A DNA stretch of 64,000 nucleotides, from contig NW_027266330.1 in the NCBI RefSeq assembly GCF_022045235.1, positions 22,196,001 through 22,260,000 on the forward strand, written 5' to 3'. Below the pieces are notes generated by a model. That model did no database searches. It had not been told where the DNA came from and saw only the letters and a program-made list of their open reading frames with translations. The position numbers and the translations under genes are program-made. Positions 7,241-42,696 of the stretch are shown piece after piece (positions within the stretch are counted from its first letter, which is position 1; every line of letters starts with the position of its first letter). This stretch comes from Haliotis cracherodii (taxonomy: Eukaryota).

Positions 7241-7304
7241 CTTTGAAAACAAATCTCCAGCCAGGAGCACCCCAGGAACTAAGAATATAATTAGGAAATC
7301 TCTC

Positions 7305-8466: not shown

Positions 8467-8752
8467 AGGTCCCAGATGGCAAACTCACGGCTAAATTCAG
8501 TAAGTTGAATGGTCGGAGTAGGTACCTGATTTACTTGAACGCAAGTAATCACGGTTCAGGGCGAAGTCAGGAACGTACTGTCACGCCAAGACAAGTAAAA
8601 CTACTGGTTATGTCTCTGCATACAAGTATAGTATGGCGGGATTAAGGGGGAACTATATATGTATCAGTCTATATAAAATGAATGACAGATGTGCTTGCAT
8701 ATATATATGACGTAATGAATGAATACAAACTTGTTTAAATTGTATGTTACAG

Positions 8753-10912
8753 ATGGTTCTAGGGTATCTCTCAGTGTTAAGCTTTATAAGGATAATTGTA
8801 TTAATGCAGTCAGTTCAACCAGGGAAAGCCTTAGCGGGAGTAAAATTTGTACATTTGAACGATGTGTACGCTTCTTATAGTACCTGGCTAATATCCTTCA
8901 CAGTGGATCTTCGACCCTATGACCGACAACTGAATAAGATTAACGACAATATTCATAGTTTTCGGAATACGGTAAATGCATTAAAAATACCGACGAGCAA
9001 ATACGAGGACGTGACTCAATACATACATAACAGCATTCGGGCCTTACTACAAAAAGAGAGCCAACAGATATTGGACAAATATAACAAGTTTAGAGTTTTG
9101 TATGGAAAACTACAAACTGTTACACGGACGCAAGGCGAACGAAAAAGACAGAAGAGAGCGCTACTGAATGTAGGCGGATTCCTGTCCCAACTATTCGGTA
9201 CAGCAAGTCAGGACGAGATGGATAGAGTTAGGCAGAACATAAATTCCTTAAGAAATAGCCAGGAAAAGGTTATTCATGTATTAGAACGCAGCCTGACTAT
9301 ATTAAACGTTACGAATACAGACATTCAGGTAAACCGAGCAAGTATAAATAGGCTGGGAAATCTTACGGTTACTATGGCTACCAAAACTTATGATTTATAC
9401 GACAAAATTAGTCTGGGAATGAAGCCAGTAATATCCTATACGGAAACCGTAGGTCAAATTCACGCCATGTTTCATTTGTTAAACAATGCAATTGACTCTC
9501 TGGGCGCGACTTTACAAGATATGTTTAATCAAGTGATAAGATGTATACAAGGACAGATATCTAGGACATTGATCCCTGAACATGCCCTACGTAAGGCTTT
9601 GTATACCCTGAAACGGAGGTGACCACCTACGCTAAGACTACCTTACGTGGTGAGCAAGGCTACCTTAAAATTGTATTATCAAAACTTCCAGACTACGCTT
9701 TTACCTGATCGAAATTCTTTCCATGTAATAGTGGCGATACCACTGCTACAAATTTCAGCGTACTTTGAATTATACAAAATAGTAATGGTACCTACTCCAA
9801 ATCTAGTCGGAAATACAACTTACACCTTCCAAACCGAGACTGACTTTTTGGCGATATCACCTGATAAAGGAAAATACACGCTATTAGACAAAGCTGAAGT
9901 TTCATCCTGTGCAAAACGGGATATAGCGTATTGTCCCCTGATTGCGGCTACTTATGTTACCACGATGGTTCCAGTGTGTATAACCTCGCTGTTTTTACAA
10001 AAATCAGATAAAACAAAGGAAAATTGTGAAATCAAAATTAAACCTCCGTCAGACACTCCTATTATTAAATCTTTAGCGAAAGGCAAATGGTTGGTATATA
10101 CTAAGGAAAGATTAGATATTGAATTAGCTTGTCTTCCTCCAAACTCCGATCTACCCACTACTATTTCAGTAGAGGCAGGGGCAAGTGTGATATCTATACC
10201 CATCCGATGCGCTGCACACTCGACTCATTTTAGCTTACCAGTTTATTTGAGGTCTGAGTCGCAATATAAAATTAGACCTAGTTTCCATAAGGAACTAAGT
10301 CTGGAAATGTATACAACGCTGTCGTCAAAATCCACTGCTAAATTAGTAACGACCACTAAGGGACCTACACAGTTTAAGATTCCACCGATAGAACCAGTTG
10401 ATAACAGTGATGAATTACTGGATGAACTGGATAGTGCAGACGAAGATATCGATTTTAATAATGGTGTTCAGTCTAATCCATCAAGTACCTTAACCATTTC
10501 GTATGCCGTTACCGGCGTATGTGTAGTGCTTCTAGTTATACTTATACTAATTATTATATATTCAAGGAGTAAGTGTAGAAGTAGGGAAATTGCTAGCAGA
10601 CAAAGTGATCATGAACGGGTAGAACTGAGAGAGAGAAACCCTAGAACCCACCGAACAGCTCAGGCAGAATTGATTCCTATGACCGAAACAACCACCACCA
10701 CACGATCCCAAGAAGTTTCGCCTAGACCAGCTCCTCGACTAGCAGGTCAGAAGAGAAAACATTCACCGTTTTATCGGGAGAAGATAAGCGAAGAACGAAC
10801 ATCCCGCGATGGAAACTCTGATGAGGAGACCATGCATCTTACATCGGCACCCCTTGATGCACGCAGACAAAACCCAAATAAAGGAACAGGTTCATTCCGA
10901 TTGGTGCAGTAA
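8753..10912 (+). CDS. env: Env-like class I fusion glycoprotein (baculovirus F/errantivirus env-like) with one in-frame TGA at 9620-9622
   Basis: Signal-like N-terminus; furin site RKRQKR then fusion-peptide-like ALLNVGGFLSQLFGTA; heptad region; Cys-rich ectodomain; TM YAVTGVCVVLLVILILIIIY. ORFs 8744-9622 and 9647-10912 share a frame (LKRR*PPTLRLP). Confidence 0.85.
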
Positions 10913-14708: not shown

Positions 14709-16263
14709 TACTACTCAAAATTTGATAGGATCGTAGATATTTTTCTTAATAAAAATACAAAATAACTGCATAACTGGCAATATTGTGTTCAAGTGAAATC
14801 AAAAACGTCTCCAACACACGTGCACGTGCATTTCATGCCATGGGAAATGCGTTTCACATCACAGTTCATGCTTTTGCTACCATTGCACGATTTCCAATCA
14901 GGCAACGGTGTCTGATTCATTCTGAAACTGTAAACTCAATTGAGTGTTTACACTACGTTTATCTACGCAATGCCCCCCTCAACGTGTAAGGCGTCGCCTG
15001 ACGACAGAACAACTGGGCAGATGTATTGGAATGCTTGATGCTGGCTATTCACAACGTGACGTTGCCAATGCACTAAACGTCAGCCAGAGCGTTGTAAGCA
15101 GGGCCTGGTCCCGACAGCAAAATTTTGGTACAGCAGCACACCGACATGGGGGTGGTCGTCAGAGGTCGACAACCCAACGCCAAGATCATTTTGTGGCTCT
15201 TCAGGCACGACGTCATCCCTTCTGGACAGCAACCAGCCTACGTAACGACCTCCTGAACGCCTCGGGGGTGAATGTGTCCACTCAGACGATACGGAATTGT
15301 CTTCACAATGCAGGTCTCTACTCGAGAAGGGCATGTGTCCGAATCCCCCTGACTGTTCGACACCGGCGGGAGCGATTGAAATGGGCTGAAGATCATGTCA
15401 CTTTGACACGGAACGATTGGGTTCCAGTTCTGTTCACCGATGAGTCCAGGTATTGTTTGGACTTTACAGACAGGAGGCAGCGGGTGTGGCGACGACAACG
15501 TGAACGTTTCCATGATGCCAACATCAGTGAACATGACCGTTATGGTGGTGGTTCCATCATGGTCTGGGGTGGAATCAACAGAGATGGAAGGACAGATCTT
15601 CATGTCCTGGAGAGAGGAACAATGACGGGGGTGAGGTACCGGGATGAGATCCTCGATGTGTACGTCAGACCCTACGCTGGTGCTGTTGGCCTGATGGATG
15701 ATAACGCCCGTCCTCATCGCGCCAGGGTGGTTGAGCAGTACCTTGAGCAGGAGACAATTGTCCGCATGGATTGGCCAGCGCGCTCGCCGGACTTGAACCC
15801 GATTGAGCATGTCTGGAACATGCTGCAGGTTGCCCTTTCACGCCGTAGAGCACAACCCACGACTTTGGCAGAGCTCGGACATGCCCTCGTGGAAGAGTGG
15901 AACAACCTTCCCATTGGGAACATCCGGGTGCTTATTGACAGCATATCTCGACGTTGTCAGGCCGTCATTGATGCAAGGGGAGGTCATACTCGATATTGAC
16001 ACTTCGTCGACTAAGTGTAATGATGGACTATCCCTCATAACTGTGTAATTCTTTCTCTTGTTTGCTGTTAACATTTTTTAATGAAATGCCTTTTGGTGTT
16101 TGCAGATTTCAAACATTCCATATTGATACAAGTTCATGCCGTTCATGAATTTTCATTCATAACATGATTAAACACGTTTCTGAGTCAGAGTCATGTCTTT
16201 TGTTATGTTTGTGGAAACTTACACACATATCACCTAGTGATCCTTATCAAATTTTGAGTAGTA
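14709..16263 (+). mobile_element. Full-length Tc1 (DD34E) DNA transposon
   Basis: TIRs TACTACTCAAAATTTGATA(A)GGATC at both ends, TA TSD, transposase inside. Confidence 0.95.
14970..15999 (+). pseudogene. Tc1 transposase, probably inactivated
   Basis: HTH region, FTDESR, MDDNARPH and SPDLNPIE with 34 residues between D and E. Likely ATG at 14970 is out of frame by one extra C in a C6 run; YAGAVG-LMDDN looks a few residues short. Confidence 0.9.
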
Positions 16264-17650: not shown

Positions 17651-17965
17651 AAGTTTGATAGACTTGAAACTAACATACCAGCATGATAGCATGATATTTG
17701 TATTTTAATATGTAAGGAAGGAAAACTGATAGCTTTAAGGTATGCTTTGTGTATCGACCATTATATAACAGCGTGTAACAATAAGAACCATAACAGAAGG
17801 AAGTAGTTTATAACGTGAACAATAATACTCGGAACAGCTCTGAGGAAGTAGGATAAACAACTATTAACATGTGACAGGGAAAAATATATTGCAACATCAT
17901 TATTATAATACTTACATACACAGATTGTGTTAGTAGCAGTAAGATGTATCTGATATGAACCACCT

Positions 17966-18243
17966 GAGTGGGTGAGTTGGGTTTTACGTCCCTTTTAACA
18001 GTATTCCAGTTATACCGCGGCGTGTCAGCTTAATGTGGGAGGAAAGCCCGAAGTGATGCAGGTCTCAGACGTTTACCACTTCGGTGAAACCCACGAGCAC
18101 GGGTATGGTGCTGACAAACCTAGAAACATAATCGGGGCGAACCGGGATTCGAACCCACAATCATATGTTTCTGGCGTGTCCAAGGGACGCAACTCTGCAC
18201 AGCGAATCGAGACGCCTTAGACGACTGGGCCACCCGTGCCCCC
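17966..18243 (-). mobile_element. SINE family 1 copy
   Basis: Near full-length match to the 13994-14270 copy. Confidence 0.9.
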
Positions 18244-18640: not shown

Positions 18641-21090
18641 ATGAACACATTAGAAGTTTGCGGACATTGTGGAGAAAAATCCAAGGGTGTTCATCCATCA
18701 TGCACAGGGTATGTTTTCATTTAGATACAGTGAAACATCCTCAAATTACTGCCTCGTGTTTGGTTCGGGTGACAATTACTAAACGATTGTCATAAGAGGC
18801 AATCACTCAAATCGTGATAGNNNNNNNNNNNNNNNNNNNNNNNNNNNNNNNNNNNNNNNNNNNNNNNNNNNNNNNNNNNNNNNNNNNNNNNNNNNNNNNN
18901 NNNNNNNNNNNNNNNNNNNNNNNNNNNNNNNNNNNNNNNNNNNNNNNNNGTTAGTAACGCAACTTTTAACAGTATTCCGGTTATATCACGGTTATTATGC
19001 CCCCTGCAGTTACAGTTGAAATGTTCTTAGAAATAACAGTACCCCATTCAAAAGCACCAAACTAGCGACATGAATAATGATTTGTATATAGTGGGATCCA
19101 TTGCAATACAACCAAGTGTATAACGACACAAACCATATTATGCTGTCCTAATTAATTCAAAATGTGATGATTCATCACGTGAAACAAGTAATGTTGTGAT
19201 AGTCCCTAATTACTTTTATTGATGCTAACTAATGGTTTTAGAAGTTGACGGTTCTGTGTGGTTCTTTGCTTATAAACGAAATGATGTCAGTATGCCAAGA
19301 AAGTATGTGGATATTAACACGTTTGAAGAGACGTTTTTTACTACATGTCCTGGAAAGAATATTCAAGTGAACAAACAAATATATGAATAAACACCTCAGA
19401 AGCTCGACTGGGTCCTGATACTGACAGTGAGATGAAGTGAAATGAGGTTTAACGTCGCATTCATGACTGTTTCACTAAAATAGCGACATGCAACTTTGTG
19501 TGTGGTGGCTTGTGTTAGTACTACATTTATGCCAGATTTATAGAGCTAGCCCACTGAGATACCAACCTGCAGACTAACACTGACACCAACTTTTACACAA
19601 TATACTTATACCGAAATAATCAGTCCGTCCTTTATCTCCATGAGTGAGTGAGTGAGTCAGTATGGTTTTACGCCGCTTTTAACAATATTCCAGCAATATC
19701 TCTCGGGTTGGGAAATATTTATTCCTGCATCACAGCTAAGGGTTATGGGGCTGTCAGTGTGTACATTGATGCCGCAAGCACTGAATGAACTGGTGTCATC
19801 CTTATGTGACATTTGAAATTTACATATAAGCTAACATACCAAAATGAAAATCAAAACCTAAGTAATCATGTATAAGCAGAGAGTAAAATATGTTGCGAGA
19901 GATCTGGTCACGGCTTTTCTGTCTGTTTTAGGAACATTGAAAGATGCCATGCAGCCGTTAAGTTGTTCCAAGACACAATGGCTACCAGCCCGAACATACA
20001 ATTTATGGGAATTCACGTCCACTATCTGTATGGCATCGACAAGAAATTAACTGATCAAGACAAACTCGAGAAAAGGGAGAAACGGAATTTGAAGCTAGTC
20101 GAACTCACAAAGCATATCTCTGCGCTCAGAAATTCTAACGGTGGCTACTTACTTGTTCACATTGTAGGCTTAATTCCAAATGAAAATTACCTTGGTGCTT
20201 TTGACGAGTTTGCAGATGACACCCTGTACAAAATGATAGAAGATGGAAGAATGTTTGAAAGCGTGTATAAAAAAGCAAGGCTTAGCGAAGCTGAAGGATG
20301 CAATCAGTTCCATGATTTCATCAGTATTTTTGTTACAAAAGGCACAGAATTTTCAACAGCTGATTTTAAAACTAAAATATCTTTAGACTGGGGAATAATA
20401 ACCCCTTTACCTATCACAATGAAGAGGTTTGTTGTCGAACAAAACAATTGCAATCACATTCATCGTGAAGAAATTGATTTCAAATTCAATGGTGACTTTG
20501 AAACGATTTCACAATTGCAAGAGAAGCGTGATTTACAACTAAAGGGCTTCATGGAAAATAAACTTAAAGTTGACTGGAAGTTGTTGTCGGGCTATGAAAA
20601 AGCCCGAACAGTTTGGGATGATTTTCGACTGAGGGAGTATGTAAGTGCCTTCACCAAGAACAAGCGGGGTGGATCCTTCCTGCTAGGAATTGGGGAAAAA
20701 GAAAAAGGCAATGATGTGTACAAGTCAAAAGATCTCATTGTCCAAGGAGTGCCACTTGAGGACGAAAATGAGTTCAGAGGCTACCTCGAAGAACTTGTCC
20801 ATGACGAGAGCCTGGTGTGTGACTTTAAGGGGCACACTGATGTTAATTGGGACATAATGGAAGTAAAATGCACCCTTGTACCCCCTAGATATGTGCAATC
20901 AAGTACTACACGTGGTCCGCACACCACGCAGTACTACATTGTCGAGGTACTGGTTCGCCCAATCAATGGAGTAGCATTTTATGACAAAAAGGGGCCTGTA
21001 TCATGCCGAATCATCAACAACATTTGTACCCCTGTTGATGTGAAAACATGGTTCGAAAAGATTGCCATGCCCACACAATCATCGCTTTGA
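18641..21090 (+). CDS. Gene A: stand-alone Schlafen/AlbA_2-like nuclease-domain protein; exons 18641-18708 and 19932-21090
   Basis: ISALRNSNGGYLLV (Schlafen N-lobe xALLNSGGG), EKRDLQLKGF (ExxxxEFK equivalent), EYVSAFTKNKRGGSFLLGIGE (AlbA_2 YVSAFANxxGGxLxIGV). The phase-2 junction joins MNTLEVCGHCGE...CTG|NIERC in frame; exon 1 is conserved in the second copy. Confidence 0.85.
18821..18949. other. Assembly gap
   Basis: Run of N inside the gene A intron. Confidence 1.
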
Positions 21091-21722
21091 TGTTTTACGC
21101 ATGTGTCATTGATAACAAAGCACAGCGTACAATGCATAAACGGAACATGAAGATCAATATGGAGATCAATATGGAGATCAATATATTCTCGTTCGGCAGG
21201 TACATTTGTCATTTTAGAAATATGAAAATCCTGAGAATATTTCCTGCTTGTTCATAAATACCATCAGAACACATAATTCAGTAGTGAGTCTTTGTTTCAA
21301 TAAACAGCTCTTAGTATTGTGTGGACTCCGTGGACCTTGGATTATGTGGACAATATACCATGCATTGCCTTTGAAATTAATGGCATGTCCGTATAACTAA
21401 TACATCATTTGGTGTAAAAAAAAATATGTCCGGTTTCAATGATTACATTTGCATATCTTGCCTTAGGCAATCTTTATCTATTGCACTTATATATGTATAC
21501 ATGTACCTATGTTATTGTATGCTTAAAAATGAATACGATGAAAGTGTACGCATTCAGTATTGCACCACTATTACTCGATTTGACTGTCATGAACCTGCAG
21601 GTTGAAGTTCCAAATAGCAAATTTAACCACTTTTAGTTGGTGAGTGAGTTAGTGAGTTTCACGCTGGTTTGGACACTATTTCAGGCATATGTGTATCATG
21701 ACGGGTTGGCTTTATGTGAAAG

Positions 21723-21987
21723 GAGTGAATGAGTGAGTGAATGAGTGAGTTGGGTTTAACGCCGCTTTTAACAGTATTCAAGTTATATGTGGGAGGAAAG
21801 CCCGAAGTGATGCAGGCCTCAGACGTTTACCACTTCGATGAAACTCACGAGCAGGGTTATGGTGCTGACAAACCTAGAAACATAATCGGGATTCGAACCC
21901 ACAATCATATGTTTCTGGCGTGCCCAAGGGACGCAACTCTGCACAGCGAATTGCGGCGCGTTAGACGACTGGGCCAACCGTGCCCCC
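21723..21987 (-). mobile_element. SINE family 1 copy
   Basis: Matches family consensus with small deletions. Confidence 0.9.
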
Positions 21988-24171
21988 TCATGTGAAAGGA
22001 ACGTGATACAATCTGTCGTTTACCTCTCTGGATAAATTGCGCATTTAGGGCCAATCATGAATTCGAAACAATGATCACTTGTTTCTGAAATAGAGAATTG
22101 CGGTCCCTTAGATAACTGTGATATCCGCGTCCCCGAAGAAGTTCTTGCTAGATATGCTCTACTTCATTCGAAATAAAATGATTTGGGAACTTTGTGCCAT
22201 AACAATATGTGATTCTTTGTTATGGAATGATATATGTATGAAGATGTTGATCACCAATGCTTTATGTAGTAATAAAACTGACGCATTGCCATACGATGAG
22301 TTGAATTAATTTTTCACACAAATAAGAATGCATTCATGTATTCATCAACGCGTAGTCACTTATTACTTACTCGTGAAAAGATCACACGTTTAATAACAAT
22401 ACACCTATAGTACACATTGTGTTATGCCATCACGTGAAAACGGGACTCTTTTGGGGGGCAGCTGGTCATTGGAATTGGCACGGCGGTAGCACTGTGTACA
22501 TATACAATGTCTGCTCTACTCCCGACAGGAACTACCTTTTTTTAACAAAACACCAGTGATGCATAGCGAATACGACTGCATCACAAAAGTATATAATTGA
22601 CATATTTGACTTGAATATGCCAAGTCCGTGAGTTTGTGCAGTTCCCTGTGCAATCTCATTTAAATGAGAAGTTTCTCGCTTCTGCTTAGCAAAGATATGA
22701 GGACATACCATTACGGGTCACGTCAGAACGACCTTTCATCCGACCAGTCAGGGCGTCGCTTACCAGATCAGGAAAGTGAATTTAGAATGTGTTTCGTGAT
22801 CATGCAACTTCGAAACATTTAACACGGGTCATTCCGTAAGATAGTTACGGCTTTACGACTGACACCATAAAATACCAGGCCATCCATTAGCCATTCAAGA
22901 ATGTTCTTTTGTTCAGTTTTCAATTTGTAATCGAAAATTTGTCAAAATAGGTTTCGAAGCGTAGTCACCATTATGGAACCAGTGCCGAAAAGCTCAGGAA
23001 AGCTGCCCTTTGATTGGCTTAGTAGACTTCTTCTCAGTCATTCAAATGGTTGGCCAAAGATTGCGAAAGGTCGGACTCGTAATGGGATGTTCTCAGATAT
23101 ATGTTTGGCGGTAGCTCATGTTTATAAGATTGGCTACCTGTGTTATTTTCCAAATACATCTGAGCTAGAATATACGGACTGTCACCTTGTATTCTTGTAG
23201 TGCAAGCATCGTGGAATTATAAAGGTTCAGAGCATCACAAAGAAACAAAATATCATGTCGAAAGTTCATCACAGCATTAATCGTGGCGTCTACCTACGAC
23301 CTTGAACTTCGTACTGTAAATCAGAGTATCGCCCCTTGGACCAAGTGGATAGTCGTTAGAAATGTCGTCCTCATCTCAACCGACGCAATTTTGTGTCATG
23401 AATCCTTCAAGCTCCGAAATTCAGGTAGTGTATATTGTCGGTAATTACAACCAATTTGATAGCAACATACCATCTGCTAACTCGTATGAAATGACATAGC
23501 GACTCGATTGTCTCGCGGTCTCCCCTCACCTAAGCTGAACCGAGTGGGAAGCTCGATTTTCCGTTAGATGTTTCTAACTTGGTGATAGTCATTTCCTACA
23601 CTATGGGCCAAACTACATTAGGCGGTTGATGATACTCTATCTTCATACAACAGGCTGTCTATGGCCGTTGAAGATGATGGTGACATGAATAGATTCGAAA
23701 CTCACGAGGAAAGTACAACCGAATTGTTAGCCCACTTGAACGCGTTAAGACTTCCGCCTCTAACATTGTTAGTTTTTGGGAAAATGTTCTACTTGTGGTT
23801 CAATATCTTCAAGTTACATGGTATTAAACTGTACTTTTCACGTGAGTTCATAGTGAGCAATAAAATCAATAAAAGTGTGCTTCGTTCCACATAGGATCTA
23901 ACTTGGACAATCTAACAGGATTAATCTTTGCGCGGACATAAAGTGCATTGGTACATTGTGCATTTGAGATTGCTGATGAAATGTGGCTTAAGTAAAAGTT
24001 GATTGTCATGGGATTATGTTTTCAAGTAGAGAATAATCCTCTCATTCCTATCTGCTTACAAAAATCGAAACATACCTTCTTATGGCTTTGTACTGATAAT
24101 ATCATATTACCCCTAACCAGGTCTGAAATGGTCATGGTATACTAGTTTAATGGTTTTTTTTATATTTTCAG

Positions 24172-27100
24172 ATGTCACTTCTTGCAGGCGAAAAGCTTAA
24201 ACACATTGGTGAAAAACGTAAAGATGAAGAGGGGGAAATTGGACAAGTCAAGTAGGAACTATAGTATAGTATCTCTCTTATCTTAATGGTGACTACTTTA
24301 ATTACAGTAGAATCTGTGAGTGTTTGAGTTGGCATTTATCATCATCATCATCATCATCATCGTCGTCGTCGTCGTCATCACCACCACCACCACCACCATC
24401 ATTCGCCTCCTCCTCCTTATCAAAACATCAACATGTTATAAAGCAGATTTAATCGGTTTTCTTCTTCTTCAGGACAAGAAAATTTGAACCCCAAAACTAT
24501 GTATTGGCCCCATATGAGCTCAAGGTACGTTGTGTCCGCTTTTATATTCCAATCATAAAACCATTCACACCATAATAGTGAGCTTAGTCATATCAGTCGT
24601 TTTACATATTGAATAATGTTGTTGTGACCAAGGTTTAGTGGGACTGAAGGTGTGAATGTTTATTTTGTTGTTTACAACAATGTTGTATGTTATTTATATA
24701 CAGTGGCTGATACATACAACAAATGCTTTAATCATGTTACAAAAACATACACACATACACGTACATGCACACATATATTCGCGGAGAATGATTAATTTGA
24801 CTTTTTTCAGACTACCATCTGCCAAGAACAAAAGCACAAATTCGATATTCAAACAAAGGACTTTTTTCTACCATCACTACAACAGATGGGACACAGTATC
24901 AAAGACATACAAGAGTTCTACTGCCCTGGTGGTACGTTCTTTTTCTTCCATTTTCTACTACAAAATAATATTAGATCCGTAAAGATCCCGGGTAGAATAG
25001 ATTTTCAGCTACCCATGCTTGCCATAAATGCAATATTTTTCAAAAAAATTGTTTTAAGGGAAAAAAACCCAGTTGCGCTTCATGTGCGCTGCCCGGTTAC
25101 ACTTCATGGCAGGAATCAATACATCACTTAAAAGGATATGACGTGAACGGTGACGTCATCCATGTTAGCTTTCTGATTAACGCGATTCTCAGCTTGGATA
25201 GCCGCCCGCTCCAGACGTGTTTTGCCCTGTCTCATTTTAGCAACTTAAAACCACCTCCTCCCAAGCCTCCTCCTCTCTACTGATAAAAGGCAACTATGCT
25301 TGTCGTTAGAGGCGACTTACGGGATCGGCTGGTCAGGCTTCCTGACTTGGTTGATGCATGTCATCGTATCCCAATTGCGTGAATCGATGCTCATGATGTC
25401 AATCACTGGGTCGTCTGGTCAAGACTCGATTATTTACAGACCGCTGTCATATAGCTGGGATACTGCTGAGTGTGGAGTTAAACAACAAAAAAAACAAACA
25501 AATCTCATCATATTATTTTTGGGTTCTAAAGTACACGCAATCTCAAGATTGCAACATTTACGGTAAGAAATCAATATATATATATATCTCCAGATGTTTT
25601 ACATTATTATGCCATTCTGGCATGTCCCTCGACACAGACAAATATATAGAGCTACTGTATTTGATATAAATGCCACACACTGAGCCATAGTTACGCATGC
25701 GAATGCTGTTGTAAACTAGTTATATCATTATCATTAATGATTTATACTTACAGGTAAACTAAATGTTGTGCCTCAAAACCTACCCCTGAAACTCAAAAGG
25801 ATTACTGAGAAACTTCAACATTTGCTTCAAAAAGGAAAATATTCTATCATGTCACAAAACAGTTTACTGAAAGAAACTGCTGGCCCAACACTTCATCAAG
25901 GAACAGATGGCTTCGTCTTTATTGCACAAACATTGTGTTTTCCCTTAAATATTGCGTGCAGTGAATTACCATCTGATATTCACTGCGATATTGTACTGAT
26001 GTTACCTTCTCAACCAGCATTTGTACTGACTTTAGTGGAAAAGGACACACCAGAAGCAAGGAAATACAACGTCAGTGTTGCTAGAGGGGTGACAACCTCC
26101 CTCAATAAGTTCATTGATGATGACTTTTCAGCAGTGTTTGGCGTCGTGTGCATGTCTCATCTAGACTCCAGAGACACATTCCAGTCCCATTTAAAGACAC
26201 TTGTAGAATCATGTAGCAAGTTTGTTACGCTTGAATCCCTTTATATGCCAAAAAGGAAATATTTTAAACTCATCACTTCCTTTTGGGCTGCGGTTGCAAA
26301 GGTAGAGCCTGGAGATCAGTTTCCCGACACTAACGTGATTAATTTCTTAACAAGAGAACAGTGCACAGCGTTGGTAGAAAATATGAATTGCAACTATGTT
26401 TTTGTGTCAACACTTCCAAAAAGTGGTGGGACTACTCTGATGTTGGAAGTGGCCAGAAGACTTCAGAATTTTCTACCAACGCATCTCATTGTCAAATCAG
26501 AGAACGACATTTCCAAATACAGGTTAGCAGATCATTTCTCTTTTCACAGTAATGTTAAAACGAATGTACTTTTTATAGTCATTATCATGTGTGTCTGGGT
26601 GTGAGTGTGTGGGAGGTGTGTGTACGTGCGATGCGTTCGTGCGCACGTGCGTGATCGTATGTGTGTGTCTCGTTGTATGTCTAAGTGTTCGCCTCTCTCT
26701 CTCAACTTACATCTTACTTGACTTTAGGAAATGCAACTCACGTGGAATTATCCAGTCTTATGAATAATAATGTCATTTTGTTACTTTTAAAAATCAATTC
26801 TTCCCCATGACTAACAACAAACTAACATGTTTTCATGTACCTTGACAACTGAATCTTGTCACAACGAAAGAGTATTTGTGTGAGGAATGTGTATTGAACA
26901 AAGTGACTTTCCACGTAATCACCATCAAATTAGCATCAAATGTGAACACACTTATTTAGTTTCAGAGGAGATTACCAATTGTGTGAAGAACAAACAGTTG
27001 ATGAACTGACTTATTAATAGCTGTGTGTATTATATTTGCAAGTGTTTTGACATTTCATTAAACGTCAAGACAACCCTTTTCAACAAAAAAGAAAGTTTGG

Positions 27101-30100
27101 TGAGAACTATTGGGTTTTAATACTGCTCCTCATATAGTAGATTTGTTTCAGAAATCTATGTGAGAGGGTTTCAACGACCTTGCAGCCTGAATGTCCTGCA
27201 AATATGACACTGGAATGGAACAGCAGCATACGTAGATGCGAGACAGCAGTTGTCGCAGAAACAATTCTGCCTTTCTACGAGGGCCAAGACCAAACCATGA
27301 AAATCATATGGACCTTCTGTTCAGGTATATTTAAAAAAAATATTTCGCAGAATTAAGAGCTGTATCAGGCTGATTGAGAAGTCTTTGTAGAAAACAAAAC
27401 AAATGTTCCAAAAATTAACCATGTTCTTCAGATTAACAAAAATACAAACTTGAAACAAAGGGATCATTTTGCATAAAATTATGCCTCATCACATTGTGTC
27501 ATATCTTAAACGATTGACTGATAGCTAATTTCACAACTGTGGCATGTTAAAGTTTAAGGAAAGCAGTAGCACCTGCATTTGCCATGCACTGTGATTGCAA
27601 ACTTCAAATAGAAAATGTGTGCTCAAGCATTGCCTATATAGATATATCACATCTGGAATATTTATGATGGTCTCTTTCTACATACCACAGAGTTCTTCAG
27701 ACCACGAATTATGGATGACATACTTGCCCTCTTTGAATCACATCGGCATGTACTTCTTGTCGGATCAGCAGGAGAAGGAAAGACAGTCATAGGCATTCTT
27801 CTTCTGGAACACTACAGATCAAAAGGAATACGAGTAGTACATGCGACCAGTGCCGTGGAAATGAAAAGCGCTATTCAAAACTCTGAAGAAACGTTTATCC
27901 TTTGTGATGACGTGTTTGGGAGGTTCAGGTGCACATTTACGTTAACACCCGATTTGGAAAACATATTCAGTCGGCTTCAAACTAAGACAAACATTAAAAC
28001 GTTATTCACTAGCAGGTGTGATGTTTACGCAGACGCACTTCCGCGTTTAGGGAAGCTTCAGTCACATTTTGCAGGTTCCAGAGAAGTGAATCTTACCGAG
28101 AAAACTCTGACAAGTGAGAAGACCAAAATGTTAGACAGATACTTAGAAGCCACAAACAGGCATATTTCTGATGCTGAAAAACACAGCATAATCTGGAAGC
28201 GAAATATTCATGGATTTGCACACTCATGTCAGTTGTTCGTCACTTTAGGAAAGGAAAACACAAACGCCGAACAGTTCTTTGACAATCCGTTGTATTTTGC
28301 TGGAGAAAGAATTCAACATCTTTTGAAGAATTCGATCATGAAGTGCCTCCTCTATCTCTTAACAGCATTCAAAGGCACACTTGATTTGAAAGATCCTACC
28401 ATTGATTCAAATGAAAAAAGACACATGGTAATGAGTTATGTCAGTTACAGAGAAACATCTATGTCTGAGGTTCTTACCGCTGCCGCAGAGGAACCATACT
28501 TGTTTACAACAGAAGGTTGTGTAAAGTTTTCTCATCCATCCTTTCTTGAAGTAACGTCAAACATCATAGCAGAATCTGACACTGAATTCATCATAAAGTA
28601 TGGACCCCTTGAACTATTTGAAAAGGCAAGAAATATGAGAGAACAAAAGTACAGCATCAGTTTGTCTGAAGACAGTCATTTCATCAAACTAGCAGAACGG
28701 TTTTCACAGGAAATAAAACTTGGTTTATTTGAAAGCTGCTGCCCACATCAACTGCTACAAAGTCAAAGCTTTGTTGATCAAGTTATGTGTCAACTTCCCA
28801 CATCCACAGATGACTTAGCTGTCGAGAAACTATTGTACTGGGCATCTAGCAATGGTTCAGATGTGATGATGAAAGCGTTGTTGCAGAAGTACCCAATGAC
28901 ACGGGAAATGTATCACCATGCAGTTGTGGGCTGCAGCAGATGGGGCAATCATTCTGCACTGGAGTTCATTGTTACCAGTTTAAAACTGACTTCTCGGGAC
29001 ATTGGGGAAATCACTGAAGAAGGGTTGCCATGCCTAATTATAGCAGCCAATCAGAATCACATTGAAGTGTGTAAAGTTCTGATCAAACACCAAGTGGATG
29101 TATACACCACAGATCCACGCATGGGGGCAAATGCACTTCATTGGGCTGCTGCAGCTGGTCACCTTGAGGTTGTGAATCTGCTGTCAAACCACATATCAAT
29201 TGAACGTGAAAGCAATGGGGGAGTTACGCCTTTGTTTGTGGCTGCAGAAAATGGGCACATGAAAGTATTTAAACTTTTACTTGAGAAGGGTGCTGCTATG
29301 AATACACAAATTAAAAGCAGAATTGTGTCATTAACAAATCCAAGAAATGAAGGCCGTGCATTAGTTAAGCAGCTTAATGTATCAGATGAAGGTTTTACTC
29401 CTCTTCATGTGGCAAGTTATGAAGGACAATATGACATTGTAAACCTCCTGATAACTGAAGGAGCTGACGTCAACTTGAAGGCTGAATTGGGACCTCCTGT
29501 AGCTTTTGCTGCAAAAGCAAATGAATCGTGTATCTTTCGTCTGTTCCTAAACGATGTGAGAGTAGATTTCAGTGACGTTATCACTGCAGCATATGAATAT
29601 GGCCGTACTGAAATGCTGAAAGAGGTTGTTCTCCATAAACGGTCACAAGCTAGCGCTATTGCAATAGCAACCTTGCAGGGAGATCTGGAGACTGTGAAGC
29701 ATTTGCTTGAGGAAAATGAAAAAAGTTTAACTTCAAATGTCGAAGGATATACACTTCTCCATCTAGCAGCAACTTTAAGCCATGAAGACATTGTGGACGA
29801 GCTCCTACAAAGAAGGATCGAAGTGAACAAATCTTCTGAAGGTGGATTCACAGCTTTACATGGGGCATCTATTACTGGCGCATCTTCAGTCGTTGAAAAG
29901 CTCATCAATAGGGGAGCAGATGTTGCCCGACTTGCCAATGGTTTCAGTCCTCTTCACTTTGCATCAATGTATGGACAGACAAATGTAGCAAGGGTTTTGA
30001 TACAACATCAAGCAGATATCCAGATGAAAGGTTATCATCAGTGGAGCCCACTTCATGTGGCAAGTATCCACAACCAACCCGACATTGTGCTGCTTTTACT

Positions 30101-30698
30101 GGAACACAATGCTGACATAGAAGCTTTGTCAGAAGACCTGTCAACACCCCTTGTATTTGCTACATATTTGAACAATATGAACATAGCTGATATATTGTTA
30201 GCTCATGGGGCTGACTTACATCCAAGAGGCATGTCATATCACCCTCTTCTAGGTATTGCTCTCCTGGGGCATCCTGAGGCTGCGAACAATTTATTTCAGA
30301 GAGGTGCAAGGGTAGATCATGTAAGTGCAGTTGGAGTAAGCGCCTTACATGGAGCTGCCTACATGGGGGCAATGGATGTCCTAAAATGTCTTCTTGAGAA
30401 TCATGCAAATCCAAACCTGAAACTGTTCGAAGGGATATCACCAAAGGAGAAATCTATCATAACAAAGCATGTGGAGAAATGGTGCAAAAGCACACCTGGA
30501 AAGGATATCAATTTGAGAAGATATGATGGTGGATCTGCGCTCCATGTGGCTGTCGATATGGGTTACACCGACATGGTACGACTTTTGTTAAAATCAGACG
30601 CTGATCGCAATCTCAGGAACTTGAAAAATGAAACTGCTGTGGATATTGCGAGAGAGAAGGAGTTCAGTGACATTGTGAGACTCTTAGAATCGTCCTAG
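24172..30698 (+). CDS. Gene B: Schlafen-linker/pseudo-helicase + STAND-like NTPase + ankyrin repeats (~1400 aa); exons 24172-24251, 24473-24524, 24811-24931, 25754-26522, 27152-27324, 27691-30698
   Basis: All introns GT-AG with consistent phases (2,0,1,2,1); total 4203 nt, open. HCDIVLMLPSQPAFVLTL...ARKY resembles the Schlafen linker; NFLTREQ...VFVSTLPKSGGTTLM resembles the Schlafen helicase Walker A region; LLVGSAGEGKT and FILCDDVFG are Walker A/B of an nSTAND3-like NTPase; many GxTPLHxA ankyrin repeats. Same exon structure in the second copy. Confidence 0.88.
24338..24420. repeat. Compound trinucleotide microsatellite (CAT)n(CGT)n(CAC)n in intron 1 of gene B
   Basis: Visible directly. Confidence 0.9.
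24976..25500 (+). mobile_element. SINE family 2 copy split by an unrelated ~250 bp insertion, in intron 3 of gene B
   Basis: Head at 24976-25026 and remainder at about 25281-25500; absent from the second gene copy. Confidence 0.75.
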
Positions 30699-31367: not shown

Positions 31368-31746
31368 TTTAATCTTATATGTTGGTGTACTGTTATTTGT
31401 ATCGAAGGTGAGTCTCCTCCTCTGGATCGAGATTGAGTGAAGTCACATTCGTAATGCTGACACAAGAACATGAAAGAAAAATTAAAGTAAAGAAGTTATC
31501 TTATGACAAAAGCACAGCTTTCATGTTTAGAAATGTTACAGCAACGTCACACGTGAGACACCAAATGGGAAACATGTTTTATCAATGAAGGGATTTTGTT
31601 TCTTTTTCTCTTTTTTAAAAAAAATAGATTTTATTCCATTTCCAAGTACATGTTATCACATATATGTAGCGGGCAAGTACATTTACAATCGAGGTAAAAG
31701 CCATAATAAAATACTATTAATTGAAGACATGTATACATTGTTTGGG

Positions 31747-32003
31747 TGAGTGAGTGAGTTTGGTTTAACACCGCTTTTAACAGTATTCCACTAATATCGC
31801 GGCGTGTCAGCTTAATGTAGGAGGAAAGCCCGAAGTGATGCAGGTCTCAGACGTTGAACACTTATGTGAAACCCACGAGCACGGGTATGGTGTTGACAAA
31901 CCTAGAAACATAATCGGGTCGAACCGGGATTCGAACCCACAATCATTGGTTTCTGGCGTGTCCAAGGGACGCAACTCTGCACAGACTGGGCCACCCGTGC
32001 CCC
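31747..32003 (-). mobile_element. SINE family 1 copy
   Basis: Matches family consensus. Confidence 0.9.
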
Positions 32004-36063: not shown

Positions 36064-36308
36064 GGGGGCACGGGTGGCCAAGTCGCCGCGATTCGCTTTG
36101 CAGAGTTGCGTCCCTTGGACACGCCAGAAACCTATGATTGTGGGTTCGAATCCGGTTTGACCCGATTATGTGTCTAGGTTCGTCAGCACCTAGTAAACGT
36201 CTGAGACCTGCATCACTTCGCGCTTCCCTCACACATTAAGCTGACACGCCACGATATGACTGGAACACTGTTAAAAGCGGCGTTAAACCCAACTCACTCA
36301 CTCACTCA
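36064..36308 (+). mobile_element. SINE family 1 copy
   Basis: GGGGGCACGGGTGGCC head and (ACTC)n tail. Confidence 0.88.
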
Positions 36309-36941
36309 CGAATATGCATAATAATTATGTAGTATCCAGTTAACTGATCAAATCAAAACTCCAACATTGTGTTAAGAACACATACATCTAATCTCCAAGC
36401 AAACACCACCTTATTTACCTGCCCCCCTCGTGTCTTACATGGGTAAATTAAAATAACATATAGTTTATTACAGTGTCAAATATTGGACATAATAAAAATA
36501 CATAACATGCTATTTAAGCATGCATGCTATGTAAGGAAAACTACGACGACGTATACATATAAACGTGGTGTCATACAAACATAATACCACATTTACAGAA
36601 ATCTACTACATATGATAAGATTAAAAGTATCTTAACATGATAGTGTCAACGTACACAGCCGTAAGTACGTATGATTATCTACAGTGGTGACATCATTCAT
36701 ACACCTTGAAATGCTTTAAATGACCTGATGTTTCACAATTGAAAGAGAAGTTTAAAATTACAACGTTTTGGGAAATAGAAAGATAGTTATCAATTTACAG
36801 GATAAGAGTTTATAATATTCTCCACAGTACAATTGGCATAACACCAAGTCATAAAGTTAAACATCATGACCGCTTTATGCTCAAGTGGCCAGTGCTAACG
36901 TTGCTTTATCCATTATTCATTTGATGGCAGTCACAGTTAGT

Positions 36942-39900
36942 CTAGGACGATTCTAAGAGTCTCACAATGTCACTGAACTCCTTCTCTCTCGCAATATCCA
37001 CAGCAGTTTCATTGTTCAAGTTCCTGAGATTGCGATCAGCGTCTGAATTCAACAAAAGCCGCACCATGTCGGTGTAACCCATATCGACAGCCACATGGAG
37101 CGCAGATCCACCATCATATCTTCTCAAATTGATATCCTTCCCAGGTGTGCTTTTGCACCATTTCTCCACATGCTTCGTTATGATAGATTTCTGCTTTGGT
37201 GATATCCCTTCAAACAGTTTCAGGTTTGGATTTGCATGATTCTCAAGAAGACATTTTAGGACATCCATTGCCCCCATGTAGGCAGCTCCATGTAAGGCGC
37301 TTACTCCAACTGCACTTACATGATTTACCCTTGCACCTCTCTGAAATAAATTGTTCGCAGCCTCAGGATGCCCCAGGAGAGCAACACCTAGAAGAGGGTG
37401 ATATGACATGCCTCTTGGATGTAAGTCAGCTCCATGAGCTAACAATATATCTACTATCTTCATATTGTTCAGATATGAAGCAAATAGAAGGGGTGTTGAG
37501 AGATCTTCTGATAAAGCTTCTACGTTGGCATTGTGTTTCAGTAAAAGCAGCACAATGTCGGGTTGGTTGTGGATACTTGCCACATGAAGTGGGCTCCACT
37601 GATGATAACCTTTCATCTTGATATCTGCTTGATGTTGTATCAAAACCCTTGCTACATTTGCCTGTCCATACATTGATGCAAAGTGAAGAGGACTGAAACC
37701 ATTCGCAAGCTGGTCAACATCTGCCCCCCTACTGATGAGCTTTTCAACGACTGAAGAGGCGCCAGTAATAGATGACCCATGTAAGGCTGTGAATCCGCCT
37801 TCAGAAGATTTGTTCACTTCGATCCTTCTTTGTAGGAGCTCGTCCACAATGTCTTCATGGTTTAAAATTGCTGCTAGATGGAGAAGTGTATATCCTTCGA
37901 CATTTGAGGTTAAACTTTTCTCATTGTCCTCAAGCAATTGCTTCACAGTTTCCAGCTCTCCCTGCAATGTTGCTATTATAATAGCATTAGTTTCTGACCG
38001 TTTATGGAGAACAACCTCTTTCAGCATTTCAGTACGGCCATATTCATATGCTGCAGTGATAACGTCACTGAAATCTACTCTCACATCATTTAGGAACAGC
38101 TGAAAGATACACAATTCATTTGCTTTTGCAGCAAAAGCTACAGGAGGTCCCAATTCAGCCTTCAAGTTGACGTCAGCTCCTTCAGTTATCAGAAGGTTTA
38201 CAATGTCATAATTTCCTTCATAACTTGCCACATGAAGAGGAGTAAAACCTTCATCTGATACATTAAGCTGCTTAACCAATGCACGACCTTCGTTTCTGGG
38301 ATTTGTTAATGACACAATTCTGCTTTTAATTTGTTTATTCATAGCAGCACCCTTCTCAAGCAAAAGTTTAAACACTTTCATGTGCCCATTTTCTGCAGCC
38401 ACAAACAAAGGCGTAACTCCCCCATTGCTTTCACGTTCAATTGATATGTGGTTTGACAGCAGATTCACAACTGCAAGGTGACCAGCTGCAGCAGCCCAAT
38501 GAAGTGCATTTGCCCCCATGCGTGGATCTGGGGTGTATACATCCACTTGGTGTTTGATCAGAACTTTACACACTTCAATGTGATTCTGATTGGCTGCTAT
38601 AATTAGGCATGGCAACCCTTCTTCAGTGATTTCCCCAATGTCCCGTGAAGTCAGTTTCAAACTGGTAACAATGAACTCCAGTGCAGAATGATTGCCCCAT
38701 CTGCTGCAGCCCACAACTGCATGGTGATACATTTCCCGTGTCATTGGGTACTTCTGCAACAACGCTTTCATCATCACATCTGAACCATTGCTAGATGCCC
38801 AGTACAATAGTTTCTCGACAGCTAAGTCATCTGTGGATGTTGGGAGTCGACACATAACTTGATCAACAAAGCTTTGAATTCGTAGCAGTTGATGTGGGCA
38901 GCAGCTTTCAAATAAACCAAGTTTTATTTCCTGTGAAAACCGTTCTGCTAGTATAATGAAATGACTGTCTTCAGAAATACTGATGCTGTATTTTTCTTCT
39001 CTCATATTTCTTGCCTTTTCAAATAGTTCAAGGGGTCCATACTTTATGATGAACTCAGTGTCAGATGCTGCTATGATGTTTGATGATACTTCAAGAAAGG
39101 ATGGATGAGAAAACTTTACACAACCTTCTGTTGTAAACAGGTATGGATCCTCTGCAGCAGCGGTGAAAACCTCAGACATAGATGTTTCCCTCAAGCTGAA
39201 TTGACTCATTACCATCCGCCGTTTTTCATTTGAATCACTGGAAGGATCTTTCAAATCAAGTGTGCCTTTGAATGCTGTTAAGAGATAGAGGAGGCACTTC
39301 ATGGTCGAATTCTTCAAAAGATGTTGAATACTTTCTCCAGCAAAAAACAACGGATTGTCAAAGAACTGTTCGGCGTTTGTGTTCTCCTTTCCTAAAGTGA
39401 CGAACAACTGACATGAGTGTGCAAATCCATGAATATTTCGCTTCCAGATTATGCTGTGTTTTTCTTCATCAGAAATATGCCTGTTTGTGGCTTCTAAGTA
39501 TCTGTCTAACATTTTAGTCTTCTCACTTGTCACAGTTTTCTCGGTAAGATTCACTTCCCTGGAACCTGCAAAATGTGACTGAAGCTTCCCTAAACGCAAG
39601 AGTGCGTCTGCGTAAACATCACATCTGCTAGTGAATAACGTTTTAATGTTTGTCTTAGTTTGGAGCCGACTGAATATGTTTTCCAAATCGGGTGTTAACG
39701 TAAATGTGCACCTGAACCTCCCAAACACGTCATCACAAAGGATAAACGTTTCTTCAGAGTTTTGAATAGCGCTTTCCATCTCCACGGCACTGGTCGCATG
39801 TACTACTCGTATTCCTTTTGATCTGTAGTGTTCCAGAAGAAGAATGCCTATGACTGTCTTTCCTTCACCTGCTGATCCGAGAAGAAGTACATGGCGATGT

Positions 39901-42696
39901 GTTCCAAAGAGGACAAGTATGTCATCCATAATTCGTGGTCTGATGAACTCTGTGGTATATAGAAAGTGACCATAAGAAACCCCAGATGTGACATTTGTAT
40001 ATGTAGGCAATGACTGAATTTGAAGTTACATATTTGAGAAAGCAAATCAGAGAAATAACACCGTCCTTACATACCCAGGTTTAAAATCTACTGTCCGTGA
40101 CAAATGCAGGTGCTACTGCTTTATCTGTACTAGAACGCGCTGTAGTCTTTGGTGAAATTAGCTTTCAAATTGAAACTCTCTTAAGACTGAACGTGTATAT
40201 GTTGTCATGCGGCAAGGAAAAATCGTTTACAAAACGATACCTTTCTTTTATATTTGTGATTTTGCTAATCAGAAGTGCATGTTTATTTATTGGTACAATT
40301 GTGCTGCAAATATTTTTTTTCGAGTTGCATTGTGAAACATTTCTGAAACATACCTGAACAGAAGGTCCATGTGATTTTGTTGGTTTTAATTGTTTCTGTG
40401 ACAGCTGCTTTTTCGCACCATTCAACTGTCATATTGGCAGGACATTCAGGATGCAAGGTCGTTGTAACACTCTCACATACTTTTCTGAAACAAATGTACG
40501 ATATAANNNNNNNNNNNNNNNNNNNNNNNNNNNNNNNNNNNNNNNNNNNNNNNNNNNNNNNNNNNNNNNNNNNNNNNNNNNNNNNNNNNNNNNNNNNNNN
40601 NNNNNNNNNNNNNNNNNNNNNNNNNNNNNNNNNNNNNCTACATAGACTGTACGTTCATTTTAACATTACTGTAAAAAAAAAGAAATGATCTGCTAACCTG
40701 TGTTTGAAAATGTCATTCTCTGATTTGACAATGAGATGAGTTGGTAGAAAATTCTGAAGTCTTCTGGCCACTTCCAACATCAGAGTAGTCCCACCACTTT
40801 TTGGAAGGGTTGACACAAAAACATAGTTGAAATTCATATTTTCTACCAACACTGTGCACTGTTCTCTTGTTAAGAAATTAATCACGTCAGTGTCGGGAAA
40901 CTGATCTCCAGGCTCTACCTTTGCAACCACAGCCCAAAAGGAAGTGATAACTTTAAAATATTTCCTTTCTGACATATAAAGGGAGTCAAGCGTAACAAAC
41001 TTGCTACATGATTCTACAAGTGTCTTTAAATGAGACTGCAATGTATCATGGGAGTCTAGATGGGACATGCACACAACACCAAACACTGCTGAAAAGTCAT
41101 CATCAATGAACTTATTGAGGGAGGTTGTCACCCCTCTAGCAACACTGACGTTGTATTTCCTTGCTTCTGGTGTGTCCTTATCCACTAAAGTCAGTACAAA
41201 TGCTGGTTGAGAAGGTAACATCAGGACAATATCGCAGTGAATATCAGATGGTAATTCCCTGCATGGGATATTTAAGGGAAAACACAAGGTCTGTGCAATG
41301 AAGATGAAACCCTCTGTTCCTTGATGAAGTGTTGGTTCTAGCAAACTATTTTGTGACATGACATGATATTTGCCTTTTTGAAGAAACAGTTGAAGTTTCT
41401 CAGTGATCCTTTTAAGATTGGTAGGTAGGATGTTAGGTACAACGTTGAGTTTACCTGTAAGTATAAATAATAAAATATAACCATTTTACAATAACCCTCA
41501 GGACTAAGGCTTTACATGTGACATCTACATCAGATACATTAGCTCTATATTTATGTGTCTGTGTCGAGGGACATGCCACATTGCCTTCATAATATAATAT
41601 ATATGTATACATATATGGTGATAACTTACTGTGCATTTTGCAATCCGGAGATTGCAGGAGAATATGAATCAAAAACATTTTTTTTAAATTATATGCCTCG
41701 AAGAAAAAGAGAATATACCTCGAGGGGAGTAGAACTCTTGTATGTCGTGAATACTGTCTCCTATCTGTTGTAGTGTTGGTAGAAAAAAGTCTCTTGTTTG
41801 AATGGTGAATTTGTGATTTTGGTCCGGGAAGATTCTTGTCTGAAAACATGTACAATTAATCATTTACACCAATACATGCGTGCAGTAACGTGTACACATT
41901 TGTGAAAATGTTTATGTGGCACAAACAAAGCTTTCATAACAACTCCTGATAAACTTTATCAGTGTGTTTCAGTAACGACCAGTATTGATGTCACCAACAG
42001 ACTACACATTCACAACATCAGTTACACTAAAAACTGGCCACAACACCGCAACTACATGTGTAAAACAACTGATATAATTAAGCACACTATAAGGTATGAA
42101 TGATATTTTTGATCAGAGTATCCTAAGGATCAAAACCTACCTTAAGCTCAGTTGGGGCCAATGCAAAGTTTTGGGTGTCAAATTTTCTTGTCCTGAAGAA
42201 GAAGAAATAAGGGTCCAATATAGGAAACCATAATCTATGTCATGACAATATTGATGTTTTGATGATGATCATGATGCTGATGATGACAGGTTACATCGAT
42301 GTAATATATAGGCTGTCATTGTGATTTGCAGAAAAGGAAATATATTTCCAGCAGGTCATGTCTACTAGTGACTGAGTTAAGCATAACATAACTGCATTAC
42401 CGCAACCGTGTTTTAAGTGAAAGATGAAGAAAATTGACACAGGATGTATTTTACATCCCTTGTGGTTAAGCTCAAAACATTTCAGACACTCCTCTGCGTG
42501 CTCTTTTCACTGCTGTTTAAAGCATCGTTACAATTCATCTTTAGCATTTACAGATTCGCCTGTGATTAAAATAGACACCATTATGATAAGAGAGATGTGT
42601 ATACAATGATTCATACTTGACTTGTCCAATTTCCCCCTCTCCGTCTTTACGTTTTTCACCAATGTGTTTAAGTTTTTCGCCTGTAAGGAGTGACAT
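36942..42696 (-). CDS. Gene B' (inverted paralog of B, ~1382 aa); exons 42696-42617, 42192-42141, 41839-41719, 41454-40698, 40484-40354, 39949-36942
   Basis: Same six exons and phases as B; indels are multiples of 3 (12 nt in exon 4, 42 nt in exon 5); total 4149 nt, open. Confidence 0.88.
40507..40637. other. Assembly gap
   Basis: Run of N in intron 4 of B'. Confidence 1.

Follow-up and report, generated by a model that had tools for sequence, protein, structure and literature searches.

A split-Schlafen locus in the abalone Haliotis cracherodii: a core-only Schlafen and a linker-headed nSTAND3-ankyrin protein as a candidate overlapping unit

The locus described here lies in a stretch of 64,000 nucleotides from the black abalone Haliotis cracherodii (G000:C67:22196001-22260000, hereafter the window) and encodes two proteins, named A and B. 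A is a Schlafen core, and B combines a Schlafen linker with an nSTAND3 nucleoside triphosphatase (NTPase) and an ankyrin array. On the forward strand, between 18.6 and 30.7 kb, three big open exons are present at 19932-21090, 25754-26522, and 27691-30698. The NCBI protein models fit the exons of the locus exactly, with P0001 (409 aa) corresponding to A and P0003 (1403 aa) to B. The B model is assembled from seven coding pieces with a total of 4209 nt (18700-18708, 24172-24251, 24473-24524, 24811-24931, 25754-26522, 27152-27324, and 27691-30698), and every border follows the GT-AG rule. The stop of A and the following part of B are separated by 3-4.7 kb. A preliminary description of this DNA had proposed a core-only protein A, a linker-STAND-ankyrin protein B, and a second copy of the pair (A' and B') with open frames, and this observation is confirmed as a whole.

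The entire Schlafen core of A, including its N- and C-lobes, is encoded by a single exon (19932-21090, +) that ends in TGA. Within this exon, the segments LQEKRDLQLK (20515-20544, +) and LLGIGEKEK (20680-20706, +) are found, and an AATAAA hexamer at 21299-21304 (+), located 209 nt past the stop, is a candidate polyadenylation signal of the A product as judged from the sequence only. When the single sequence of A was searched against the PDB, no match was obtained. In Pfam, the SLFN_AlbA_2 match anticipated for A was found at a borderline level only. A profile built from 40 A homologues matched the N-terminal domain of pig SLFN11 in the PDB with an E value of 1e-19 and SLFN14 residues 17-353 at 2.5e-15, in addition to SLFN12, rat SLFN13, and SLFN5. 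The AlphaFold2 model of A reached a predicted local distance difference test (pLDDT) score of 89.5, and the PDB matches ranked 1-25 for this model by Foldseek were all Schlafens (best E 8e-16). A is an entire two-lobed Schlafen core with the corresponding fold over approximately 330-350 residues, and it ends at the vertebrate core end; the profile and the fold search thus bear out the proposal that A holds the Schlafen core region only. Furthermore, a phmmer search of 1.84 billion representatives placed the relatives of A in 93 clusters, nearly all with proteins of 330-450 aa and none exceeding 798 aa.

The active-site segment of A reads E221-x4-Q226-x-K228, with E279 as the third site (P0001 numbering). 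In pig SLFN11, the RNase cluster consists of E204, E209, and D248 together with K211, a lysine that is invariant in active members, and the E209A substitution abolishes RNase activity (PMC10359600). Residue Q226 of A aligns with E209 of pig SLFN11 (E214 of the human protein) and is a glutamine in both A and A'. Of the 40 family members, 25 have Q and 15 have E at this second site. Little or no variation occurs at the remaining three positions, with E221 and K228 invariant across the family and an acidic residue at the E279 position. A does not contain the three-carboxylate RNase cluster, having Gln226 at the E209 position, and its nuclease status is not established because Q226 replaces an essential glutamate. 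The designation of A as a nuclease in the preliminary description therefore stands with respect to the Schlafen core, but catalysis is weakened by the glutamine found at site 2 in both copies. That A works as an active tRNA-cleaving RNase appears unlikely to us.

The coding sequence of B includes three small exons ahead of its first large one. The exon at 24172-24251 (+) carries a conserved ATG (MSLLAGEKLKHIGEK...) immediately preceded by the acceptor AG, and it is followed by exons at 24473-24524 (+; TRKFEPQNYVLAPYELK) and 24811-24931 (+; TTICQEQ...DFFLPSLQQ...), the last of which is kept in paralogues. The intron between the first two of these exons contains a compound trinucleotide microsatellite with ATC, GTC, and ACC runs at 24340-24400.

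Exon 4 of B (25754-26522, +) encodes a Schlafen linker of the SWADL type and the first strand, P-loop, and helix of the helicase. As a single sequence, this exon alone aligns with residues 424-627 of human SLFN5 (E 0.002), and the two remain colinear between the SWAVDL region and the Walker A of the helicase. At the latter position, B reads TLPKSGGT (PKSGGTT) where SLFN5 has GLPGSGKT, and the Walker A of B therefore lacks the lysine (STLPKSGGTT, 26407-26436, +). A profile of 24 paralogous linker exons matched SLFN5, SLFN11, and SLFN14 only in the PDB. The structure model of exon 4 (pLDDT 83.6) gave 12 significant PDB matches (E <= 0.001), all of them Schlafens, with SLFN5 as the best (4.6e-9). 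The ESM Atlas clusters nearest to exon 4 carry the Pfam linker family PF21026, which is considered a lead only, and a direct hmmscan comparison of the exon with Pfam returned no family even at E 10. The SWA(V)DL signature itself is absent from B, where the motif position reads AQTLCFPL. Residues of about 89-344 of B are a Schlafen linker (SWADL / SLFN_GTPase-like) domain. The SLFN5 alignment, the profile, and the structure model agree with the earlier proposal that B opens with the linker and the start of the helicase. Nearly all paralogues have PGSGATT or a similar sequence at the P-loop, followed by a strongly conserved TTLMLEVARRL; the lysine-less P-loop of B is therefore not a product of local decay.

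Exon 5 (27152-27324, +) joins this dead P-loop stub to the STAND NTPase. The last exon (27691-30698, +) encodes the nSTAND3 NTPase, a helical region, and a long ankyrin array that runs to the stop. The nSTAND3 family (PF20720) was detected by Pfam at 64.3 bits against a cut-off of 27.2. Both its Walker A (GSAGEGKT, 27762-27785, +) and its Walker B (FILCDDVFG, 27894-27920, +) are intact, in line with the intact P-loop STAND-like NTPase that had been proposed. The predicted ankyrin array was likewise recovered, with the families Ank, Ank_2, and Ank_3-5 matching over residues ~440-980 of the last exon (E 1e-48 to 1e-80). The Pfam families foreseen for B were thus found for nSTAND3 and Ank, but not for the linker exon. 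No NACHT, NB-ARC, or LRR domain was detected by Pfam in B alongside nSTAND3 and ankyrin. B is thus not an NLR sensu stricto, and the term NLR-like refers only to its likely way of working. The locus does not encode a long (group III) Schlafen either: a stop follows the core, the Walker A lysine is gone, and the helicase is not continued.

The 5' end of the locus provides a putative link between the two proteins. A short coding exon at 18641-18708 (+), with its GT donor at 18709, encodes MNTLEVCGHCGEKSKGVHPSCT, a zinc-finger-like peptide of the form CxxCG...HxxC. The B model begins with MHR-MSLL, and its MHR is derived from ATG CAC AGG at 18700-18708, the last 9 nt of this exon, which is the only place in the window where MHR precedes a GT donor. 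The H. rubra orthologue of B (P0117) begins with MNSLVVCTHCGEKLERTEQGIHSAC, comprising the whole shared exon, and then continues straight into the next exon of B. In H. rufescens, the A-type orthologue P0118 begins with MNTLEVCSHCGEKLEYTETDIHLACTE, joined to |NIERC, and therefore combines the shared exon with the core exon. Its N-terminus (MNTLEVCSHCGEK..HLACTE, then NIERC) displays the same join as the A model of the preliminary description (18641-18708 to 19932). The NCBI model of A uses an alternative first coding exon at 19232-19302 (+; MVLEVDG...PRK), which showed no similarity to the N-termini of the family; both candidate first exons end in phase 2 and fit the core exon. The same N-terminal motif heads the core-type proteins P0013, P0011, and P0016 and the linker-type protein P0102. 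In P0011, P0016, and locus L005:9-, a CxYCG head is followed by ~190 aa of repeated 'IP.G(F/Y)(E/D)CV' units and then by the core. Seven paralogous loci showed no exon of the shared type in the interval from the core exon to the linker exon.

Because annotated proteins of three species start A-type and B-type products with exon 18641-18708, A is predicted to sit inside the first intron of B, with the distal first exon common to both, and A probably shares the promoter and first exon of B. The two genes described earlier as adjacent do lie on the same strand, but the annotated coding start of B at 18700-18708 is upstream of A, which would place A within the first intron of B. Overall, we consider it likely that A and B form a shared transcription unit. 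B also has a proximal alternative start, an open exon of 21 codons at 23362-23424 (+; MSSSSQPTQF...SSEIQ, then GT) that is in frame with exon 24172 and homologous to the first coding exon of the H. rufescens B isoform X1 (P0108). An assembly gap of 129 N (18821-18949) lies within the intron after exon 18641-18708; it touches no coding exon of either model and is crossed by no coding frame. Frame continuity across the gap is set by the splice phase, with exon 18641-18708 ending in phase 2 and exon 19932 opening with the third codon base. A further exon may be hidden within the gap.

The arrangement was not confined to the window. A six-frame search of the whole assembly returned 114 core-exon matches, representing 107 distinct exons, and 80 linker exons. 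At least 66 of the 107 core exons have a linker exon on the same strand within 12 kb downstream (median 2.0 kb, minimum 836 bp), and only 4 core exons have one upstream. This organization is the rule in a family that comprises at least 66 loci of the H. cracherodii genome, and at least two loci other than that of the window end in nSTAND3. Locus L027 (G000:C6:21843500-21853499, +) contains a core frame at 600-1796 (398 aa), a linker frame at 2751-3911 (386 aa), and an nSTAND3-ankyrin frame at 5993-9652 (1219 aa). Locus L028 (C6:38.28 Mb) encompasses a core, a linker, and an nSTAND3 open reading frame (ORF) of 450 aa, in which ankyrins were not detected. The NTPases of these loci (C6:21.84 Mb and C6:38.28 Mb) are ~27% identical to that of the window locus, and the recurrence of the core-linker-nSTAND3 order at this level of identity indicates that the association between Schlafen and STAND modules is old and repeated.

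The position of the core stop is also a family feature. In both window copies and in 7 paralogues (30-40% identity), the stop lies 6-11 codons past the conserved W-F/W-Y motif that ends the core, and the conservation of this position across nine loci suggests that the stop is real and inherited rather than a random intron stop. The second ORFs of the family open 1-6 kb downstream on the same strand. At a paralogous locus on the minus strand (L003/L009/L010, G000:C67:13184000-13212000), the H. rufescens linker-type models begin either 17 nt past the core stop (MHRKQQR) or, in a different frame, 41 nt ahead of it. A strong donor, AAG|GTTAGT, is located 40 nt past the core stop and is used by these models, which suggests that the core and linker exons, with both ORFs, are carried on one mRNA at this C67:13.2 Mb locus.

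These observations bear on the possibility that A and B are made as one protein, in which splicing, readthrough, or recoding past the stop would yield a core-linker-STAND-ankyrin chain, that is, a long Schlafen with a replaced helicase. Such a chain would agree with the colinearity of A (409 aa) followed by B (1403 aa) with SLFN5, which runs from the core to the linker at about residue 424 and on to the Walker A. It would also agree with a paralogue of H. rufescens (P0029, XP_048251734.1; 798 aa) that retains the core and a linker-like segment in one chain, followed by an Apolipoprotein L domain, and with the core frame of the C67:13.2 Mb locus, which would run on in frame past the stop and into the exon that follows. 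However, the stops differ in kind (TGA, TAG) and yet occupy the same place in 9 loci, none of the 93 clusters of A homologues exceeds the length given above, and P0118, the orthologue of A, also terminates at this stop. Stop-codon readthrough, raised by the frame of the C67:13.2 Mb locus, is ruled out by a second in-frame stop one codon further on in L004/L005 and by a TGA within 20 codons in the window. Selenocysteine insertion or another form of recoding is ruled out by the different stops used (TGA here, TAG at L003). Upstream of the A stop, the sequence offers no in-phase donor that could be used. A donor just past the stop, as found in the paralogues, was likewise considered and rejected: the first good one lies 109 nt on (21199|21200), follows a stop, and does not match the phase of B exon 24172. 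We regard a single A-B polypeptide as highly improbable.

A further reading is that A and B are two independent genes. A would then be an ordinary short (group I-like) Schlafen, and B would be a STAND-ankyrin receptor that retains the linker as an inherited scaffold or as an effector-less leftover, while their adjacency and shared 5' sequence would be left over from a single ancestral gene and from tandem duplication, and the two proteins would not be physical partners. The proximal first exon that B has of its own (23362-23424) fits this reading, and so do the core exons (41 of 107) and linker exons (14 of 80) for which no partner was detected. In H. rubra and H. rufescens, annotated linker-headed proteins without a core (P0102-P0104) place the linker ahead of quite different tails, and P0103 and P0104 gave no match in the PDB. 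Independence is at odds, however, with the colinearity of the 66 loci with both ORFs open, with the conserved stop position, and with the strong conservation of TTLMLEVARRL in the 'dead' stub among paralogues of 35-40% identity. The recurrence of the three-part order at distant loci and the 5' exon common to annotations of three species also speak against it. Taken together, two independent genes are a possible but rather less probable explanation of the locus.

The second copy of the pair is part of an inverted duplicate at 36.9-49.4 kb that is 86-90% identical to copy 1. It is represented by the NCBI protein models P0002 for A' (377 aa; 47793-48923, -) and P0004 for B' (1382 aa; 36945-42696, -), both of which are open, as the preliminary description had noted. 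B' has the same exon plan as B, with an assembly gap of 131 N (40507-40637) in the intron between exons 4 and 5, and the zinc-finger-like exon of this copy is found at about 49319-49398 (-). A short interspersed element (SINE)-like insertion at 48891-49056 (-), similar to 25332-25498 (+), replaces the acceptor and the first ~20 core-exon codons of A'. As a result, A' opens with codons derived from the repeat and lacks the NIERC... segment that is present in copy 1 and in P0118 of H. rufescens.

Orthologues of B are present in H. rufescens, H. rubra, and H. asinina and are open in all three, while an orthologue of A was found only in H. rufescens (P0118). As judged from LOC numbers and protein N-termini, the two B copies pair with different H. 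rufescens orthologues (copy 1 with P0108, copy 2 with P0107) and P0118 pairs with A', so the duplication is older than the split between H. cracherodii and H. rufescens. The ratio of nonsynonymous to synonymous substitution rates (dN/dS) between the copies is 0.61 for A and 0.29-0.36 for B, and both copies are under purifying selection.

Decaying duplicates of a broken Schlafen gene, heading for loss and with frames open by chance, might account for the relaxed dN/dS of A, for the replacement of the A' 5' end by the SINE, and for the loss of the catalytic Glu and of the Walker A Lys. Yet neither ORF is interrupted in either copy or in orthologues of other species, the dN/dS of B is about 0.3, and the site-2 Gln and the lysine-less P-loop are conserved states of the family rather than random damage. 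Decay is consequently the reading to which we assign almost no weight.

Several mobile elements were observed in the window. One SINE-like repeat of ~250-280 bp, with copies 71-90% alike, occurs around and inside the gene copies at 17965-18243, 21733-21991, and 31743-31984; further copies are located at 36064-36309, 43830-44110, and 49424-49680. An apparent remnant of a long terminal repeat (LTR) element with an F-type envelope gene is found at 7684-10912 (+), where Integrase_p58_C and Baculovirus F protein matches occur in three successive ORFs. Additionally, Tc1/mariner-type transposase ORFs are found at 14944-15999 (+), with HTH_Tnp_Tc3_2 and DDE_3 domains, and at 58688-59458 (+), with helix-turn-helix (HTH) domains only.

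We somewhat favor the explanation that the window contains, as two inverted copies, one locus of a large abalone split-Schlafen family, in which A and B form one overlapping unit with a putative NLR-like switch and possible docking in trans. Across the family, the core frame terminates at the conserved stop, precisely at the boundary between core and linker, and what remains of the ancestral protein, consisting of the linker and the lysine-less P-loop, makes up a further open frame downstream on the same strand. Here and at two or more other loci, this frame continues into an intact nSTAND3 NTPase, joined here by an ankyrin array. Splicing of exon 18641-18708 to the core exon, with its own stop and AATAAA, would give A, a short Schlafen with a CxxC..HxxC head. 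Splicing of the same exon to 24172, with the core exon skipped, would give B, which could also be produced with the proximal first exon at 23362.

In the proposed mechanism, B may act as an NLR-like switch in which a ligand is recognized by the ankyrins and oligomerization is brought about by the NTPase. The N-terminal linker of B could serve as the docking site for free A, so that the sensor would gather or release the RNA-binding core. In SLFN5 and SLFN11, the linker packs against the core within one chain. Because of Q226 at the position of the essential second carboxylate, A may bind RNA or tRNA rather than cleave it in the canonical way. A functional partnership between A and B is, in our view, about evenly balanced, and direct docking between linker and core is put forward more tentatively. 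A complex prediction of A with residues 1-400 of B scored 0.00 in both runs, which is evidence neither for nor against binding.

Several points weigh against this explanation. The shared-exon model rests on NCBI protein models that are possibly partly ab initio. In this copy, the frame of the zinc-finger ATG reaches the donor in phase 2, which does not fit the frame of B exon 24172; translation into that exon works only from the internal ATG at 18700. The NCBI model of A starts at exon 19232, and A and B are annotated by NCBI as separate genes, which also counts in favor of their independence. Copy 2 may no longer have the shared-exon link to A', as the SINE disrupts the 5' end of that gene. 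Finally, a glutamine in place of the catalytic glutamate makes the role of A as an RNase effector doubtful.

Comparison with described systems reveals both similarities and differences. The vertebrate long (group III) Schlafens SLFN5, SLFN11, SLFN13, and SLFN14 share the module order of A plus B, with a two-lobed core, a SWADL linker, and a P-loop. They are single polypeptides, whereas the abalone locus has a stop between core and linker. They also possess a live superfamily 1 (SF1) helicase, in contrast to the lysine-less stub followed by nSTAND3 and ankyrins in abalone B. In addition, the SWAVDL motif of the vertebrate proteins is not kept in B, and the second catalytic Glu is Gln in A. The mouse short (group I) Schlafens Slfn1 and Slfn2 are core-only proteins, as is A with its ~400 aa. 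Both mSLFN2 and hSLFN5 bind RNA without canonical RNase activity (PMC10359600), and A may behave in the same manner. Unlike the mouse short Schlafens, A has a CxxC..HxxC head, is predicted to sit in the first intron of its partner, and belongs to the colinear family described above.

The bacterial NACHT/STAND defence protein bNACHT34 carries an N-terminal Schlafen RNase (bioRxiv 10.1101/2022.07.19.500537). As in the abalone locus, the Schlafen module of this system, which is grouped here with Avs/AVAST, is linked to a STAND NTPase whose sensor is C-terminal. However, the Schlafen core is fused to the NTPase in the bacterial proteins, whereas in abalone the linker alone is fused and the core is separate; moreover, the NTPase of bNACHT34 is of the NACHT type, while B contains nSTAND3 and belongs to an animal host. 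Metazoan nSTAND3 proteins, such as the HEPN_DZIP3-nSTAND3 protein P0009 and the nSTAND3-ankyrin protein P0008, have the same NTPase family and a repeat tail as in B. An N-terminal RNase-type module is recurrent in these proteins, but the head of B is instead a linker with a dead P-loop, which is not an effector by itself. Literature searches turned up neither an account of split Schlafens in molluscs nor one of a Schlafen-linker-STAND-ankyrin protein.

Work on Schlafens has dealt almost exclusively with the mammalian proteins, as restriction factors that cleave tRNA and consist of a single chain. In the abalone family, the protein is cut at the boundary between core and linker, and both halves remain open at dozens of loci and across several species; in the locus described here, the helicase is swapped for an NLR-type switch with a repeat sensor. 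A first exon common to both products, combined with a core exon that serves as the last exon or is left out, would represent an unusual form of co-regulation of two partners. As a tentative extension, the Schlafen gene may have become a programmed two-product locus, in which one promoter and first exon lead either to a free core or, when the core exon is skipped, to a linker-headed sensor that captures the core in trans. The 66 or more loci that pair this putative RNA-targeting module with varied sensors might then constitute an invertebrate immune repertoire based on split-domain complementation. If the halves reassemble, the abalone loci would offer a natural system in which to ask what the linker does to the core, and they would be the first animal case found of the coupling between Schlafen and STAND modules known from bacterial NACHT defence proteins.

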